Made by a program: the position numbers and the translations under genes
In this document: one piece after another, positions 36,328-45,301 of the stretch
How the letters are laid out: each line of letters opens with the position of its first letter
How positions within the stretch are numbered: position 1 is the first letter of the stretch
The notes under the pieces: model-generated
What the model was told of the DNA's origin: nothing
The model's input: only the letters and a program-made list of their open reading frames with translations
Databases searched by the model: none
Assembly: GCA_965240325.2 (NCBI GenBank)
Contig: OZ251231.1
Span: 124,001 to 188,000 of the forward strand
Length of the DNA: 64,000 nt
Reading direction: 5' to 3'
Source: Rebecca billardiae RCC1528
Lineage: Eukaryota > Protista > Haptophyta

Positions 36328-38055
36328 TCACACGCCGAGCTGCCGCAGCGCGAAGTCGCCGCCTGGCAGCACGTGCGCGCTCGCCTGTGCCATCGCCGTC
36401 TCGTTGTACAGCACCTCGGTGTAGTACTCGCGCGCGGGGATGTAGCTCGGCCGGCCGAGCCCGAAGAAGGAGTGCGCGATGTTCTCCGCCATCTGCAGCG
36501 ACGCCTCGGCGAAGCACTGCAGCACGCCCCACGCCTCGTTGGCCACGAACAGGCCGGGCGCGTGCGGCAGCGGCGAGAGCGCCTCGATGGGCACGCGCGC
36601 CTTGGGGATGCCGCGCGGGCTCGCGCCGGGCAGGCTGTCCTCCTGCGTCAGGTGGCACCCCGCCTCGATCCCGTCGGCGCGCTCGTCCCACAGCGAGAGC
36701 ACGCCCGAGTCCGGCCGCAGCGCCGACACGCGCTCGAGCTCGCCCGCCGCCTCCAGCCCGGCGCGGTGCAGCGCCACGAGCGCCGCGTGCACGGCCTGGA
36801 GCAGCTGCGCCTCGCGCGGCACGGCGGGGTCGAGGTCGAGGACGGAGTCGCCGTGGCGGCTCACGCGGTACGAGCCGTAGTGCCGCACCGCCGCCGGGTC
36901 GCCCATGTACGCCGCCTGGATGTACCCGCGGCACTTGGCGGGGCCGGGCCGGTCGCAGCGCACGTCCGCGTCGTGATACATGCCCTGCAGCGGCGCGGGC
37001 GACTGGCGCGCGAGCACGCTGGTGATGCCTGCGTCTGCGAGCTTCCACGCGGCCGAGTTGTTGAACGGCCCCGCGGTGAGCCCGAGCACGTTGCGCCACC
37101 ACGCGTCCTCGTAGTGCACGTACAGCTTGAGCAGCGGGAACGAGTTGACGGCGTGCAGCACCGCCGAGTGCGCGCCACGCTGCTCAGCACGCGCCCCCGC
37201 CGGCTGCGCGCGCGCGCTCGGCTCAGGGCGCGCGCCACGCTCGTGCGAGGGAGAGAGGGGCGCGTCGCCGAGGCCGCGGCTGTTGGCGAGCACGCGGAGC
37301 AGCGGCTGCTGCGGCAGGTTGAGCACCACGCGCTTGGCGCGCGCCAGCTTGCCGTTCGCAAAGCGCAGCGCGTACGGCCGAGCGGCCGGCTCGGCTTCGG
37401 CTTCGGCTTCGGCGCTGGCTTCGGCGCTGGCTTCGGCTTCGGCTTCGGCGCTGGCTTCGGCTTCGGCTTCGGCTTCGGCGCCGTCTCGCTCGATCGAGAT
37501 CAGCTCGTGCTCGAAGAAGACGGCGGCGCGGCCGGGGCCGGCGGTGCGCGCGAGCTCGAGCAGCCCTTCGACGAACGTCAGGTACCCCCGGTCGTGCCCG
37601 TCCTCGTCGACGATCTTCGCCAGCGCGTGGTCCCACGCGCGCGCCTGCGGGTCGTACCGCCGGTGCTTGAGCCCCAGCTGCCGCACGATCACGCCGGTCG
37701 TCACGGGCGTGTGGATGCACACGTTGCCGGACGGGTGCAGGACGGGGTCGCACGTGCGGTTGAGCGCGAAGCGGTACGCGCCGGCCTCGACCACCAGGTC
37801 GCCGCGCGGCCCCTGCCCGCGCAGGCTGTGCACGCGCCCGCCCGGTCGGCCGAGCATCTCAAACACACACACCTCGGCGTACCCGTGCTCCGCGGCGGAC
37901 TCGACGAGGCGCGCGGCGAGGTAGGCGCCGCCGGGGCCCGCACCAACGATGGCCACGTCGCATGTCATGCCCTCCTCCGGCTCGGCGCCGGACGCCGCCT
38001 GCGCGGCGACGAGCGCGGCGAGCGCGAGCAGCAGCAGCGAGAGGACGTGAGCCAT
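36328..38055 (-). CDS. Secreted FAD-dependent amine/L-amino-acid oxidase-like protein
   Basis: Signal peptide MAHVLSLLLLALAALVAAQA; DVAIVGAGPGG; FE..GRPGGRVHS; EAGAYRF; KLYVHYEDAWW; LFVANEAW..FAEASL; internal (AE)n low-complexity insert at ~37390-37480. Confidence 0.85.
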   Translation of the reverse strand: MAHVLSLLLLALAALVAAQAASGAEPEEGMTCDVAIVGAGPGGAYLAARLVESAAEHGYAEVCVFEMLGRPGGRVHSLRGQGPRGDLVVEAGAYRFALNRTCDPVLHPSGNVCIHTPVTTGVIVRQLGLKHRRYDPQARAWDHALAKIVDEDGHDRGYLTFVEGLLELARTAGPGRAAVFFEHELISIERDGAEAEAEAEASAEAEAEASAEASAEAEAEAEPAARPYALRFANGKLARAKRVVLNLPQQPLLRVLANSRGLGDAPLSPSHERGARPEPSARAQPAGARAEQRGAHSAVLHAVNSFPLLKLYVHYEDAWWRNVLGLTAGPFNNSAAWKLADAGITSVLARQSPAPLQGMYHDADVRCDRPGPAKCRGYIQAAYMGDPAAVRHYGSYRVSRHGDSVLDLDPAVPREAQLLQAVHAALVALHRAGLEAAGELERVSALRPDSGVLSLWDERADGIEAGCHLTQEDSLPGASPRGIPKARVPIEALSPLPHAPGLFVANEAWGVLQCFAEASLQMAENIAHSFFGLGRPSYIPAREYYTEVLYNETAMAQASAHVLPGGDFALRQLGV

Positions 38056-38470: not shown

Positions 38471-40633
38471 TCAGCGCCTGTTGCACGCCTGCTTGCTCGC
38501 CGAGATGGCGGCGCCGACCGCCAGGTCGCGCTGGAACTTCTGCTGGCTCGACTGCGCGGCGCGCTTGTCGTCCGAGGCCAGCTTGAACTCGATCGCGTCG
38601 ACCAGCGCCTTCCACGAGGCCTGCGGCCGGGCGGAGGGCCAGGCGGGAGGGCGCGGCCGGGGCGGCGGCGATCGGCGATCGGCGCGCGGTCGCGGCCGCG
38701 CCGACGCCTCCGCGCCTCCGCACCCCGCGCGGCGCGCATCGCGCATCGCGCGCGCGGCCCGGCTGCGCGCCGTGCCGCCCCTCTGAGCGCCCGCGCCCCC
38801 TCGCGCACCTCGATGATGTTGGTGCTCACGCCGATGGTCGAGAAGAGCGCGCCCGAGGCCTTGTCGGACGACTCGATGATCACGCGGATCGACGCGGCCG
38901 TCCCCGCCTCGGCGCCGTTCACGACGCGCACCTTGTAGTCGACGAGGTGCAGGTCGGCGAGCGTGGGGTACGCGTCGCGCAGCGCCTTGCGCAGCGACGC
39001 GTCGAGCGCGTCCACCGGCCCGTCCCCCTCGGCCACCTCGTGCCGCTCCGAGCCGTCCGGCAGCCGGACCTTCACCGTGGCCTCGGTCAGCTCGCGCGAG
39101 AGCTCGGAGGCGCACTCCGCCTCCTCGTGCGAGAGGCCCTCGATGTTCACGTTGTACCTGCGAGGCGCGCCGCGCGCGCGCGAGCGCGCGTGGGAGGGGG
39201 CGGGCGCGCGCGCGTGAGCGAGCCTGCCGGCCACGCCACGCCGGCCGGCCGGCGCGCGGCGCGCGGCGCGGCGCGCGGCGCGGCGCGCGGCGCTCGCGCG
39301 GCGCGCACTTGACGCGATGGAAGTGCGAGCAGAACTCGCCCGAGGCCTTGGAGACGAGGAGGTCGAAGGAGGCCTGCGCCGCCTCGAACTGGTACCCGAT
39401 GTTCTCCAGCCGCACCACCTCGCCGAGCACGCGCTTCGTCACCTCCGGGTCGGAGATGTCCTTGCCGGCCGTGAGCGCCGCAATGTTGGAGCGGCCCGAG
39501 AGCTCGGAGACGAGGATGCGGCGCGCGTTGCCGACCAGCTCGGGCGCGAGGTGCTCGTACGAGGTGGGCGCGAGCTGCATGGCGTGCGCGTGCATCCCGC
39601 CCTTGTGCGCGAACGCCGAGCGGCCGACGAACGGCTGCCCCGGCCGCGGCGTCAGGTTGGCCGTTTCATACACGAAGCGGCTCAGCTCGGTGAGGCCGTC
39701 AAAGCCGGCGCCGCGCGTGCAGCCGGCGAGCACGCGGTACCCGTCGCGCTTGAGGCCGAGGTTGGCGGCGATCGAGACGAGGTCGGCGTTGCCGCAGCGC
39801 TCGCCGATGCCGTTGATCGTGCCCTGCACCTGCGCCGCGCCCGCCTCCACCGCCGCGAGCGAGTTGGCGATCGCGAGGTCGCAGTCGTTGTGGCAGTGCA
39901 CGCCGACGCGCGCGCCCAGCTCCGAGACCGCGTCGAGCGCCGCGGCGGTGAGCCGGCCGATCTCCTCGGGCGAGGTGCCGCCGTTGGTGTCGCACAGCAC
40001 GATCGTCTCGGCGCCCGCCTCCGCCGCCGCGCGGATCGTCGCGCGCGCGTGCTCCTCGTTCGCCTTCCACCCGTCGAAGAAGTGCTCGGCATCGTACACG
40101 AGCCGCCGCCCCTGCGAGTGCAGGAACCCGACCGAGCCGCGGATCATGTCGATGTTCTCCTCGAGGGAGACGCGGAGGACGGCGGAGACGTGGAAGTCCC
40201 ACGTCTTGCCCACGATCGTGCACACCGGCGCCTCCGAGCGCAGCAGCGCCAGCATCCCCGGGTCCTCGGACGGCTCGACGCCGCGGCGGCGCGTCATGCC
40301 AAACGCGCACACCGCCGCGTGCCGCAGGTTGAGCGAGCGCACGCACTCGAAGAAGGCGACGTCCTTCTCGTTGGAGAGGGGGTAGCCGCCCTCGATGTAG
40401 TCGAACCCCATGTCGTCCAGCCGCTGCGCGATCTGCAGCTTGTCGTTCAGGCTGAGCGAGACGCCCTCGCCCTGCGTGCCGTCGCGCAGCGTCGTGTCGT
40501 ACAGCTCGATTGTGCGCGGCGACGGGCCGGAGCGCTCGGCGGCGGCGGCGGCGGCGGCGTTGAGCTCGCGCCGCGCCGCCTGGGCGAGCCAGCCGCGCGC
40601 CGCCCACCGCGCGCCGTGCCGCGTCGCGAGCAT
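38471..40633 (-). CDS. cimA: Citramalate synthase (bacterial-type CimA, DRE-TIM family); exons 40633-39309, 39157-38809, 38620-38471
   Basis: [116 protein letters not shown]|ASWKAL. Introns 39158-39308 and 38621-38808. Mitochondrial-like presequence. Confidence 0.85.
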
Positions 40634-40903
40634 CGCGCCGCGCGAGACGATGAACGTGGCCTTGGGCCGGCGGCGGTCGGCGTGCACGCGGTCTCGGTCG
40701 AAACCAAAACAAAATGGCCGGAGCGGCCGCGGCCTCGTGGTTTCTCACGGCGACTCCTCCCCTGGTCGACGCGGGTGGGTAAGCCGTCCAAACGTTTCCT
40801 ACGCGCGCGTTTCGTGGCTGGCACGTCGACGGTCCTGTTCCGCGCAAGGACGGCGCTCCGGCCCGTCCTGGCTGTGGCCACGCACCGCCGCCGCTCGTCA
40901 CTC
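40634..40903. promoter_or_regulatory. Putative bidirectional promoter shared by cimA and leuCD
   Basis: 270 bp between the two divergent ATGs, with A-rich tract AAACCAAAACAAAA at ~40701-40714. Confidence 0.55.
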
Positions 40904-43320
40904 ATGCTGGCGGCCGCGCTCTCGCGCGCCGCGCTGCGCTCACGCGCACGCGGCGTGGTCGTGCCGCTGGGCGCGGGCGCGCGCGCGCTCTCGAGCGGCG
41001 CGCCGCGCACCCTCTTCGACAAGATCTGGGACTCGAAGCTCGTCGACCAGCAGGACGACGGCACGTGCCTGATCTACATCGACCGCCACCTCGTGCACGA
41101 GGTCACGTCGCCGCAGGCGTTCGAGGGGCTGCGCAACGCGGGGCGGAAGGTGCGCCGGACGGACCGCGTGCTCGCGACCGCGGACCACAACGTGCCCACC
41201 TCCAACCGCGCCGGCGGCATCGAGAACCCCGAGTCCAAGGTGCAGGTCGACACGCTCGAGCAGAACTGCAAGGACTTCGGCCTCACCTACTTTGGCATGG
41301 ACGACGAGCGGCAGGGCGTGGTGCACATCATCGGGCCGGAGCAGGGGCTCACGCTGCCGGGGATGACGATCGTCTGCGGCGACTCGCACACCGCCACGCA
41401 CGGCGCGTTCGGCGCCCTCGCCTTCGGCATCGGCACCTCGGAGGTCGAGCACGTGCTCGCGACGCAGACGCTCGTGCAGCGGCCCGCCAAGAACATGCGC
41501 ATCAGCGTGGTGGGCGAGCTGCCGCTGGGCGTGACGTCGAAGGACCTGATCCTGCACACCATCGGCGTGATCGGCACCGCCGGCGGCACCGGCCACGTCA
41601 TCGAGTACGAGGGCCCTGCCATCTCGAAGCTCTCGATGGAGGTGGGCGCGCGCGGCTCCGCACTGCGAGCGCTCGCGCGCGCGCGCGCGCGCGCGCGCGC
41701 GCTCCGCGGCGGAGAGCGCGCCGGCCGCGCCGCGGCTGAGGCGCGCGTCTGCCCGCCGCGCGCGCGGCGCAGGCGCGGATGACCATCTGCAACATGTCCA
41801 TCGAGGCGGGCGCGCGCGCGGGCATGATTGCGCCCGACGACATCACGTTCGAGTACCTCAAGGGACGGCCGATGTCGCCCAAGGGCGCGCTGTGGGAGCA
41901 GGCGGTGGCCTACTGGCGCACGCTGCCGTCGGACGCGGGCGCAAAGTACGACACGGAGGTCACCATCAACGCCGCCGACATCGCGCCGCAGGTCACGTGG
42001 GGCACGTCGCCGCAGGACGTGCGGCCGATCACCGCGGCCGTCCCCGACCCCGCCGCCGAGCCCGACCCGTCGCGCCGCGCGGCGATCGAGCGCTCGCTCG
42101 AGTACATGGGTCTTCGCGCGGGGCAGCCGCTGAGTGAGGTGGCTGTGGACAAGGTCTTCATCGGCTCGTGCACCAACGGGCGGATCGAGGACCTCCGCGC
42201 CGTCGCCGAGGTGGCGCGCGGGCGCAAGGTCGCGGACAGCGTCGCGCACGCGCTGATCGTGCCGGGCTCGGGCATCGTCAAGAAGCAGGCGGAGGCGGAG
42301 GGGCTGCACGAGGTGTTCACCGCGGCGGGGTTTGACTGGCGCGAGCCGGGCTGCTCGATGTGCCTCGCAATGAACGAGGACAAGCTCGCGCCCGGCGAGC
42401 GCTGCGCGTCCACCTCCAACCGCAACTTTGAGGGGCGGCAAGGGCGCGGCGGGCGGACACACCTCGTCTCGCCCGCGATGGCGGCGGCGGCGGCGATCGC
42501 GGGGCGGCTCACGGACGTGCGCGCGCTCGGCGGCAGCCGCGGGCTGCACACGCGCGCGCGCCCGCTCTCGTCCGCCGCCGCGCCCGCCGCCGCCGGCGCC
42601 ATGCAGCCGTTCGTGCGCATGAGCGGCGTGCTCGCGCCGCTGCCGATCGCCAACGTGGACACGGACATGATCATCCCGAAGCAGTTCCTCAAGACGATCA
42701 AGCGCACGGGGCTGGGCAAGAACCTCTTTGACGAGATGCGCTACACCCCGGACGGGCAGGAGATTCCGAGCTTTGTGCTCAACCAGCCCGCGTACCGCGC
42801 GGCGACCATCCTCGTCTCGCGCGAGAACTTTGGGTGCGGCTCCTCGCGCGAGCACGCGCCGTGGGCGCTGCTCGACTTTGGCATCCGCGCGGTGATCGCG
42901 CCCTCGTTCGCCGACATCTTCTTCAACAACTGCTTCAAGAACGGCATCCTCCCCATCGTGCTGCCCAAGGTGCGCGCGCGACCGCGCCCCGCGCCGCCCG
43001 CGCGCGCGCGACCGCGCGCGCGCGCGACGCGCGACGTCGCTCGGCCGACCCCGCGCGCGCGCGCGACGCCTCGCGGCTGGCAGGACGTGTGCGAGGAGCT
43101 GCTCAGCGCGGCCACGGCGTCGCCGGGCACGGAGCTCACGATCGACCTGCCCTCGCAGGCGATCGAGCGCCCCTCCGGCTCGGCGATCAAGTTTGACGTG
43201 GAGGAGTTCCGCAAGCACTGCCTGCTCAACGGCCTCGACGACATCGGGCTCACGCTGCAGAAGGCGGACAAGATCGACACGTACGAGAAGAAGCAGAAGG
43301 AGCTCTACCCGTGGCTGTGA
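40904..43320 (+). CDS. leuCD: 3-isopropylmalate dehydratase/isomerase, fused LeuC+LeuD; exons 40904-41641, 41773-42969, 43084-43320
   Basis: LeuC: [64 protein letters not shown]. LeuD: [56 protein letters not shown]. Introns 41642-41772 and 42970-43083. Confidence 0.95.
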
Positions 43321-43885: not shown

Positions 43886-45301
43886 ATGTCGACGGTGTTC
43901 GAACGTTGGCAGAGCGCGCACGACAAGGGCGAGGTGTGGAGCGCACCGGTACACGAGGGCGGTGCGTCGAGCTTCTCCGAGAACTATGAGCTCCAGGAGC
44001 TGCTCGGTCACGGCGCCTTCGGCGAGGTGCACCGCGCGAAGCACCGCGCGACCGGCAAGGCGGTGGCCGTCAAGATCATCGCCATCCCGGGCGACGTGAA
44101 AGGCAGCGAGCGGAGCGCGTACGAGGCAAACGTGCGCAAGGAGATGGCGCTCCTGTGCAAGATGTCCCACCCGCACATCATCTCCGTCATTGAGGCGTTC
44201 GCGCCGCCCTCGGAGAAGGGCGGCGTCGCCGCGCAGCCGAGCCCGGCCAAGCCGATTCGCAGCAAGAACGACCTCGAGCTCACGTGGCGCGTGGTGCTCG
44301 AGCTGTGCATGGGGCACGAGCTGCAGTCGATCCTCGACGCGCATGGCGCGCTCGACGTGGAGGACGTGCGCGTGATCGCCGCGCAGCTCGTCTCGGCCGT
44401 GCACCACATGCACGAGAATGGCGGTGCGCGCCGGCCGCGCGTCGCGCGCGCCGCGGAGACGCGCAGCCCTCTCACCGCGCGCGACGCGGTGCGCCCCGCG
44501 CGTCTCCCGCCCGCAGTCGTGCACCGCGACATCAAGCCGGCCAACGTGATGGTCCTCGACGGCGCGCTCGACGGCCCGAACACGCGAATCAAGATCCTCG
44601 ACTTTGGGCTGGCGCACGGGCTGGACGAGCAGTTTGTGCAGCTCTACAGGGACGTGGCGGTGCGCCGCGCGTCGCAGGCGGGCACCGGCGTGATGAAGGG
44701 CGCGAGCAGGGGCAAGGCGGTCGCCCGCGCCGTGGCGGGGTCCAGGCGCGCCGTCCCCTCCGCCGAGGAGAAGATCGAGGAGTCGCACGCCGAGTCCGGC
44801 AGCACCAAGCACCGCATGAGCGTGCCAGAGGTGCAGCTCAACCCGTCTCGGTTCTCGTTTGCGGTCGAGCCCGCAGGCTCGCGGATGTACGCCGCGCCCG
44901 AGATCCAGGACTACCACCGGTACAAGCAGAAGGACGGCGCGGCGGGCGGGCTCGTCGTCGCCACCACCGTCGTCGTCGACGCGTACTCCGTCGGCGCGGT
45001 GCTCCGCCACCTGCTCACCGGCGTGCCGCCCGACCGCGTCGTGCGAGACTTCATCAGCCAGCAGCGGGCGAGCCCGATCGAGTGGCTGATCCGAGTGGTG
45101 AAGGCGTGCGCGGGCAAGCCGGTCGTGCACTACCGCTACCTGAGCGAGCTGCCGGAGGGCGTCGCCGACTTGCTCAGCGGGCTGCTCGACCCGTCGCCGC
45201 GGAAGCGCACGACCATCACGCAGCTGTGCGATCACCCGTGGATCCGAGGCGCCCCTGGCGCCGACGCGCTGCCCTTCCCTCCTCTGCCCCAGCGATCGTA
45301 G
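43886..45301 (+). CDS. Ser/Thr protein kinase; intron 44424-44516
   Basis: LGHGAFGEV, VAVK, HRDIKPAN, DFG, YAAPE, DAYSVG, R..ITQLCDHPW. Confidence 0.92.
   Translation: MSTVFERWQSAHDKGEVWSAPVHEGGASSFSENYELQELLGHGAFGEVHRAKHRATGKAVAVKIIAIPGDVKGSERSAYEANVRKEMALLCKMSHPHIISVIEAFAPPSEKGGVAAQPSPAKPIRSKNDLELTWRVVLELCMGHELQSILDAHGALDVEDVRVIAAQLVSAVHHMHENGGARRPRVARAAETRSPLTARDAVRPARLPPAVVHRDIKPANVMVLDGALDGPNTRIKILDFGLAHGLDEQFVQLYRDVAVRRASQAGTGVMKGASRGKAVARAVAGSRRAVPSAEEKIEESHAESGSTKHRMSVPEVQLNPSRFSFAVEPAGSRMYAAPEIQDYHRYKQKDGAAGGLVVATTVVVDAYSVGAVLRHLLTGVPPDRVVRDFISQQRASPIEWLIRVVKACAGKPVVHYRYLSELPEGVADLLSGLLDPSPRKRTTITQLCDHPWIRGAPGADALPFPPLPQRS

Follow-up and report, generated by a model that had tools for sequence, protein, structure and literature searches.

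The window examined here is a stretch of 64,000 nucleotides from the haptophyte Rebecca billardiae RCC1528 (contig OZ251231.1, positions 124,001 to 188,000 of the forward strand), and within it two genes, cimA and leuCD, lie head to head in surroundings of about 72% G+C. cimA, a bacterial-type gene of the citramalate synthase family, is on the minus strand (38471..40633) and has three exons (40633-39309, 39157-38809 and 38620-38471) separated by introns of 151 and 188 nt, with a product of 607 amino acids. leuCD, a fused gene for isopropylmalate isomerase, is on the plus strand (40904..43320) and also has three exons (40904-41641, 41773-42969 and 43084-43320), with introns of 131 and 114 nt and a product of 723 amino acids. 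Between the two start codons lies a spacer without assigned strand (40634..40903), exactly 270 bp long as read from the sequence, which is presumed to act as a shared bidirectional promoter. A preliminary description of this DNA had reported the same head-to-head arrangement with 270 bp between the ATGs, and the coordinates, the exons and the divergent orientation all proved to be as it had placed them.

All four introns of the two genes are of the GT..AG type with the donor GTG[C/G]GCG and a 3′ end in CAG, and this single, host-type donor is shared by cimA and leuCD. Every exon junction in both genes is gap-free in alignment to transcript-derived or related orthologues, and in a related genomic open reading frame (ORF) from a public assembly (P0001) the similarity breaks exactly at both cimA intron positions; the gene models, and with them the observation made in the preliminary description, therefore hold. 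The second leuCD intron (42970-43083; 114 nt) is in frame and contains no stop codons, and because of this the protein database holds a prokaryote-style ORF call (P0456, 513 amino acids) that reads straight through it. A search of public sequencing runs for the locus returned one run, which contained 5% of the words of the locus and yielded two exact short contigs and no joints, and this has no bearing on expression or splicing.

The family to which the cimA product belongs was determined with profile models. Exon 1 alone scores 467.7 bits against the NCBIfam equivalog TIGR00977 (citramalate synthase; cut-off 450), to which exon 2 adds 101.2 bits. The LeuA models (TIGR00973, TIGR00970 and NF002085-8) all remain far under their cut-offs, the best of them at 227.6 bits (cut-off 517), with TIGR00973 at 206.2 (598.7) and TIGR00970 at 50 (697.4), and the models for homocitrate synthase and for Leptospira-type CimA fall far under theirs. 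The HMGL-like barrel (PF00682), HCS_D2 (PF22617) and a C-terminal LeuA_dimer domain (PF08502) are all present in Pfam searches, which is the same three-domain architecture as in the bacterial TIGR00977 CimA of the Geobacter sulfurreducens type. The bacterial-type CimA identity proposed at the outset is thus upheld: the protein lies above the TIGR00977 cut-off and under every LeuA cut-off, and in the tree it falls inside bacterial CimA, not LeuA. Haptophyte CimA also carries a C-terminal tail of about 30 residues past the end of the Planctomycete protein (38471-38560 in the window), with the stretch ISAS[KR]QAC conserved among the pavlovophyte-like orthologues.

The best database matches to the window CimA are eukaryotic, at 71-78% identity, and include one transcript cluster with a protein of Pavlovales sp. 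CCMP2436 and another with a protein of Emiliania huxleyi; transcripts of orthologues are known from MMETSP and from E. huxleyi. Next in rank are more than 100 Planctomycete proteins at 66-70% identity, which where named are Rhodopirellula, Blastopirellula, Pirellulaceae, Pirellulales and Pirellula staleyi, and in a library clustered at 50% identity the top representative is 66% identical to the window protein and the next only 55%. In maximum-likelihood trees the haptophyte sequences form one clade (support 100/100) with a pavlovophyte-like branch (the window, P0001, CCMP2436 and P0003) and a prymnesiophyte branch (E. huxleyi and others). This clade is nested in a subclade of 20 rows together with Rhodopirellula-like sequences (100/97), within a Planctomycete clade of 38 rows (100/100), and the nearest bacterial members, from Pirellula staleyi DSM 6068 (P0116) and Rhodopirellula sp. 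(P0019), are 66-70% identical to the window protein, which is nested among them. Such a pattern is as expected if the gene entered the haptophyte stem in a single transfer and was inherited vertically from then on, and the trees strongly support horizontal transfer from a donor among Pirellulales-like Planctomycetes. The suggestion in the preliminary description that cimA was acquired horizontally has consequently gained a clade with full support nested in Pirellulales CimA, at 66-70% identity compared with 55% or less for other representatives. Unlike bacterial CimA, the window gene is nuclear and intron-bearing, specifies a presequence of about 40 residues in addition to the C-terminal tail, and is paired with leuCD.

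Identity of 66-70% to Planctomycete proteins is also what would be seen if cimA were bacterial contamination or an assembly chimera. This reading is refuted because the gene has introns, two of the GT-AG type with the same donor as in the neighbouring gene; moreover, the N-terminal extension and the C-terminal tail are absent from the bacterial proteins, the flanks are eukaryotic (a protein kinase gene beside the pair and retrotransposons elsewhere in the window), and orthologues exist in transcriptomes and as a multi-intron gene in Pavlovales sp. CCMP2436. We therefore regard contamination as having practically no chance of being correct.

Bacterial-type CimA is less rare in eukaryotes than the preliminary description had implied. 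A second eukaryotic clade of TIGR00977-type CimA, unrelated to that of haptophytes, contains sequences of red and streptophyte algae (Porphyridium, Cyanidium and Spirogloea), and a cluster in the ESM Atlas named '(R)-citramalate synthase family' is 77% Eukaryota, with Chlorophyta the commonest. These Archaeplastida proteins (Porphyridium purpureum KAA8495569.1, Cyanidium caldarium KAK4534051.1, Spirogloea muscicola and the ESM Atlas cluster) are likewise nuclear and TIGR00977-like and have N-terminal extensions, but their clade is a separate one, at about 50% identity, and is not Planctomycete-related. Algal bacterial-type CimA is accordingly already annotated in databases, and the haptophyte gene is a separate, independent acquisition.

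Among 75 near-invariant columns defined across 101 bacterial family members, the haptophyte CimA clade retains 73, and at columns invariant in Planctomycetes it has fixed only one change, a conservative replacement of Ile by Val; there is therefore no sign of active-site remodelling toward the use of 2-oxoisovalerate. A search of the PDB found no structure of the TIGR00977 subfamily, the best matches being 2-isopropylmalate synthase (IPMS) at an E value of about 1e-42. From family membership and these unchanged family-invariant residues, the haptophyte protein is likely to be a citramalate synthase. Alternatively, the planctomycete-derived enzyme could be a xenologous replacement that serves as the haptophyte IPMS, in which case the pair would encode the first two committed steps of leucine synthesis. 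Substrate choice among 2-oxoacids can switch in the LeuA family, as in the apple citramalate synthase that arose from IPMS (Sugimoto et al, 2021; PMC7826400), automatic annotation assigns the orthologues to 2-isopropylmalate synthase (K01649), and IPMS followed by LeuCD would be consecutive steps just as CimA and LeuCD are. However, the sequence passes the CimA equivalog cut-off while every LeuA model reaches less than half of its own, the invariant columns remain intact without any non-conservative substitution fixed relative to the Planctomycete donors, and characterised bacterial citramalate synthases are reported to be essentially pyruvate-specific (PMC7826400). We consider a replaced IPMS unlikely.

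For the partner gene, the leuC model TIGR00170 scores 343 and 427 bits over two exons (cut-off 560.25) and the leuD model TIGR00171 scores 188.8 bits (cut-off 116.25), so that leuC and leuD are contained in one polypeptide, within which Pfam detects Aconitase and Aconitase_C. The translation contains the cysteine motifs GSCTN and GCSMC, which, as in the aconitase family, are taken to be ligands of a 4Fe-4S cluster. With a full LeuC joined to LeuD in one reading frame, the gene is the fused isopropylmalate isomerase that the preliminary description had recognized. Fused LeuCD was seen in fungi, ichthyosporeans, green algae, cryptophytes, ochrophytes, chlorarachniophytes, labyrinthulomycetes and euglenids, and these eukaryotic proteins are monophyletic in the tree and sister to Alphaproteobacteria; the Leu1-type enzyme of fungi, a single polypeptide with LeuC followed by LeuD, shares this one clade with the window protein. 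Alphaproteobacteria are also the closest bacterial relatives by identity (LeuC 61-76%, LeuD 52-67% across 18 proteobacterial loci), Rhodospirillaceae-like genomes giving the highest values, and no planctomycete locus is found among the 80 best bacterial LeuC/LeuD loci. The window LeuCD is thus the ordinary pan-eukaryotic fused form.

Within the eukaryotic clade, the window LeuCD and P0457 group with the proteins of Hondaea and Amorphochlora, and members of this subgroup have leaders of mitochondrial type and a short linker with an R-x-F/Y/L-S-T motif. Prymnesiophyte LeuCD lies in the other subgroup, where it is sister to ochrophyte LeuCD in the company of fungi, green algae and cryptophytes, with strong support that is retained under a site-mixture model. 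In the prymnesiophyte and ochrophyte proteins the linker is long and includes a conserved GP-II..RE stretch, which is absent from the window LeuCD. An approximately unbiased test rejects monophyly of haptophyte LeuCD (likelihood difference 160, p = 4e-5), for a group that was named after the tree had been seen. Unexpectedly, then, the partner LeuCD is of different gene lineages in the two haptophyte classes, and such a non-orthologous partner implies either that the pair formed twice or that leuCD was replaced in place.

Two structural details of leuCD may be recorded here. The linker between LeuC and LeuD in the window protein (42517..42606, plus strand) is rich in Ser, Arg and Ala and contains RPLSS, and R-x-[FYL]-S-[ST] occurs in this linker in eight of nine fused LeuCDs of the window subgroup (recorded for the window, P0457, P0532, P0470, P0459, P0460, P0461 and P0467); such a motif would agree with the mitochondrial processing peptidase (MPP) cutting the protein into two subunits. 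In prymnesiophyte leuCD (contigs L004, about 7929-7769, and L005, 6006-5775), exon 1 encodes little beyond the presequence because a short intron follows directly after the ...PRTLYDK codons, and the window gene has no intron at that position.

The preliminary description had proposed that the arrangement be checked in related algae. Pavlovales sp. CCMP2436 has the same head-to-head pair, as do two contig lineages of prymnesiophytes, in which LeuCD falls with that of Chrysochromulina and Prymnesium. The genes around the pair are different in every case. In the prymnesiophyte contigs the distance between the start codons is about 183 bp (L005/L006) or about 71 bp (L004). In CCMP2436 each gene is interrupted by many introns and has its first exon amid assembly gaps (5,443 N in the locus), and the evidence from this genome consists of the orientation and of a distance of less than 1.2 kb between the nearest detectable exons. 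The divergent arrangement is thus kept in both haptophyte classes, though it is missing in two lineages; its recurrence in three further haptophyte lineages means that the adjacency is not due to chance. No contig location was found for the LeuCD of Prymnesium parvum. In the ochrophytes Triparma and Cylindrotheca leuCD is not paired with cimA and its neighbours are unrelated, and an ancestral pairing in ochrophytes was rejected on these grounds.

The pair had been called operon-like, and as a joint arrival this does not stand, since cimA is planctomycete-derived and leuCD is of alphaproteobacterial affinity. In two Pirellulales genomes examined there is no leuCD near cimA; the pair therefore came together within the haptophyte nucleus and did not enter it as an operon. 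Co-transfer of the two genes as a bacterial operon was rejected for both reasons, namely the alphaproteobacterial affinity of LeuC and LeuD and the separate location of cimA in Pirellulales. In these two genomes valS, encoding valyl-tRNA synthetase, follows straight after cimA on the same strand (L011 11721-14852 and L012 11645-14791).

It could be argued that the two genes are neighbours by historical accident and are not co-regulated; the acquired gene might, for example, have survived by landing beside an active promoter, in an arrangement that some lineages have simply yet to break. The two lineages of the CimA clade from which the pair is missing would agree with this, as would the spacer, in which scans for bacterial promoters and terminators and for repeats found only GC-rich noise and no distinctive or conserved motif. 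Yet the pair has been kept in both classes while its other neighbours changed, the spacer stays very short (71-270 bp), and the leuCD partner comes from different lineages in the two classes, for which inertia would be insufficient and re-formation or in-situ replacement is indicated. An accidental arrangement therefore seems rather improbable, and the short spacer between them is the probable promoter of both genes. In a prymnesiophyte-clade lineage without the leuCD neighbour, cimA is instead head to head, at 158 bp, with a YjgF/RidA-like ORF (L007 1927-2325 and L008 1922-2320), the Pfam match of which is under the cut-off (30.6 against 35 bits). RidA proteins are linked with isoleucine synthesis in other organisms.

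Both products carry N-terminal leaders, and their targeting was judged from simple sequence features. Codons 1-40 of cimA (40514..40633, minus strand) encode an Arg/Ala-rich extension that is absent from Planctomycete CimA, and codons 1-33 of leuCD (40904..41002, plus strand) encode a leader with six Arg, no acidic residue and the sequence RALSS; each is presumed to be a mitochondrial presequence, and the presequences quoted in the preliminary description had been correctly read. Relative to bacterial homologues, haptophyte CimA and LeuCD have 25-45 extra N-terminal residues with medians of 6-7 Arg+Lys and 0-1 Asp+Glu; in the CimA orthologues alone the extensions are 29-45 residues long, the medians are 7 for Arg+Lys and 1 for Asp+Glu, and the hydrophobic core of a signal peptide is absent. 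The maximum hydropathy over 10 residues is about 0.8-0.9 in haptophyte leaders and about 2.6 in ochrophyte LeuCD, where it is followed by AF, SF or CF. Ochrophyte LeuCD leaders have the classic form of a signal peptide followed by an "ASAF"-type (phenylalanine) plastid signal, and two cryptophyte-type sequences are alike. The MPP-type R-3 motif, counted as R-x-[FYL]-[SA]-[STA] with the expectation taken from shuffles, occurs in 5 of 9 haptophyte CimA leaders (shuffle mean 0.9) and 11 of 18 haptophyte LeuCD leaders (1.2), compared with none of 12 ochrophyte LeuCD leaders (0.8) and none of four archaeplastid CimA leaders (0.4), which are also longer (61-87 residues). In the window, the LeuCD leader has such a motif (RALSS) and the CimA leader has none.

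In algae whose complex plastids are of red origin, a protein must have a signal peptide to enter the plastid. If the products were nonetheless targeted to the plastid, or to both compartments, branched-chain amino acid synthesis would stay in the plastid as it does in plants and diatoms. The reliance of the targeting call on simple features leaves room for this, and prymnesiophyte LeuCD is sister to the plastid-targeted LeuCD of ochrophytes; however, none of the 27 haptophyte leaders has the hydrophobic core seen in 12 ochrophyte and two cryptophyte-type leaders, and the haptophyte leaders are enriched in MPP-type motifs. Plastid or dual targeting is accordingly doubtful, and import of both products into mitochondria is probable and well supported by the features of the presequences. 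The mitochondrial-like presequences first noted in the window are matched by Arg-rich, acid-poor leaders without a signal peptide that are conserved in the haptophyte orthologues of both genes, from which ochrophyte LeuCD differs.

Neither gene beside the pair is related to amino acid synthesis. On the minus strand, an ORF at 36328-38055 encodes 575 amino acids that include a Rossmann domain of the FAD/NAD(P)-binding type as well as an internal Ala-Glu repeat, and on the plus strand an ORF at 43886-45301 encodes a protein kinase of 471 amino acids in which the kinase domain is matched in three stretches.

We propose that the two genes, which belong to the nuclear genome of a pavlovophyte-like haptophyte, form a metabolic pair. 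cimA would have been acquired once from a Pirellulales-like planctomycete before the split of Pavlovophyceae and Prymnesiophyceae, a timing suggested by the shape of the tree, and would after transfer have gained its spliceosomal introns and N-terminal presequence, whereas leuCD is the resident isopropylmalate isomerase. Mitochondrial CimA would condense pyruvate and acetyl-CoA to (R)-citramalate, LeuCD would convert (R)-citramalate to 3-methylmalate, and a LeuB-type dehydrogenase would convert 3-methylmalate to 2-oxobutyrate, which would constitute a threonine-independent entry to isoleucine; LeuCD would serve leucine synthesis too. This chemistry is predicted from family membership and from the unchanged family-invariant residues. 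Mitochondrial targeting together with functional pairing is plausible from the comparison across species, and the leaders and the pair taken together suggest that a major group of marine algae may make isoleucine from pyruvate by a route that has not been described. The proposal as a whole, a horizontally derived mitochondrial CimA joined with resident LeuCD on a route to isoleucine, is in our judgement somewhat favoured.

Several points weigh against it. The function of TIGR00977 reportedly rests on few bacterial members, for instance the Geobacter enzyme (Risso 2008, as cited in PMC7826400), and we know of no enzyme assay for any haptophyte or planctomycete member of the family. The CimA leader in the window, besides having no R-3 motif, contains three acidic residues. 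Absence of the pair from two other lineages of the same CimA clade indicates that the pairing is not obligatory, and the later steps of isoleucine synthesis may be plastidial, so that metabolites would need to be exchanged between compartments. A more far-reaching version holds that haptophytes, among them bloom-formers such as E. huxleyi, make isoleucine from pyruvate in mitochondria and that selection has tied the planctomycete-derived cimA to the leuCD of each lineage through a bidirectional promoter of less than 300 bp, by double pair formation or by in-situ replacement, so that a gene gained horizontally would be the centre of a eukaryotic metabolic cluster; this we offer only tentatively, as a possibility that we would sooner doubt than accept.

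The proposed route has a counterpart in apple, where the enzyme MdCMS opens a citramalate route to 2-oxobutyrate and isoleucine in a eukaryote (PMC7826400). MdCMS evolved from plant IPMS and makes (S)-citramalate (PMC7826400), and before this enzyme no citramalate synthase had been molecularly characterised in any eukaryote (Sugimoto et al, 2021). In contrast to MdCMS, the window gene encodes a bacterial-type CimA that keeps its LeuA_dimer domain. With respect to arrangement, yeast GAL1-GAL10 and the nitrate-assimilation clusters of algae are eukaryotic divergent pairs of pathway genes. The apple enzyme is said to be without a regulatory domain. Like GAL1-GAL10 and the nitrate clusters, the locus described here has two pathway genes diverging from a short spacer, but one partner is a bacterial acquisition and co-regulation is here putative.

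In the searchable literature, no paper was found that links citramalate with haptophytes or E. huxleyi, and searches on citramalate with phytoplankton, microalga or Chlamydomonas returned only engineering papers, cyanobacterial work and incidental mentions. Some ochrophyte lineages are reported to have had their isopropylmalate synthase replaced laterally, and isopropylmalate dehydratase is treated as polyphyletic in ochrophytes (Dorrell et al, 2017; PMC5462543), and the haptophyte gene is not described in that study. The locus is thus a real and undescribed case that is ordinary in kind, as regards the CimA family, a transfer from bacterium to alga and a divergent metabolic pair, and its odd feature is the non-orthologous partner.

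Haptophytes are major marine primary producers. If the proposal is true, their metabolic models would have to be changed to include a mitochondrial route to isoleucine that is independent of threonine, and the interpretation of carbon-isotope patterns in essential amino acids as source tracers in food webs could also be affected. The transfer from bacterium to alga is clean and datable and its donor group can be named, and because the acquired gene adjoins the gene for the next step, the pair offers a direct test case for how foreign genes are wired into host regulation.

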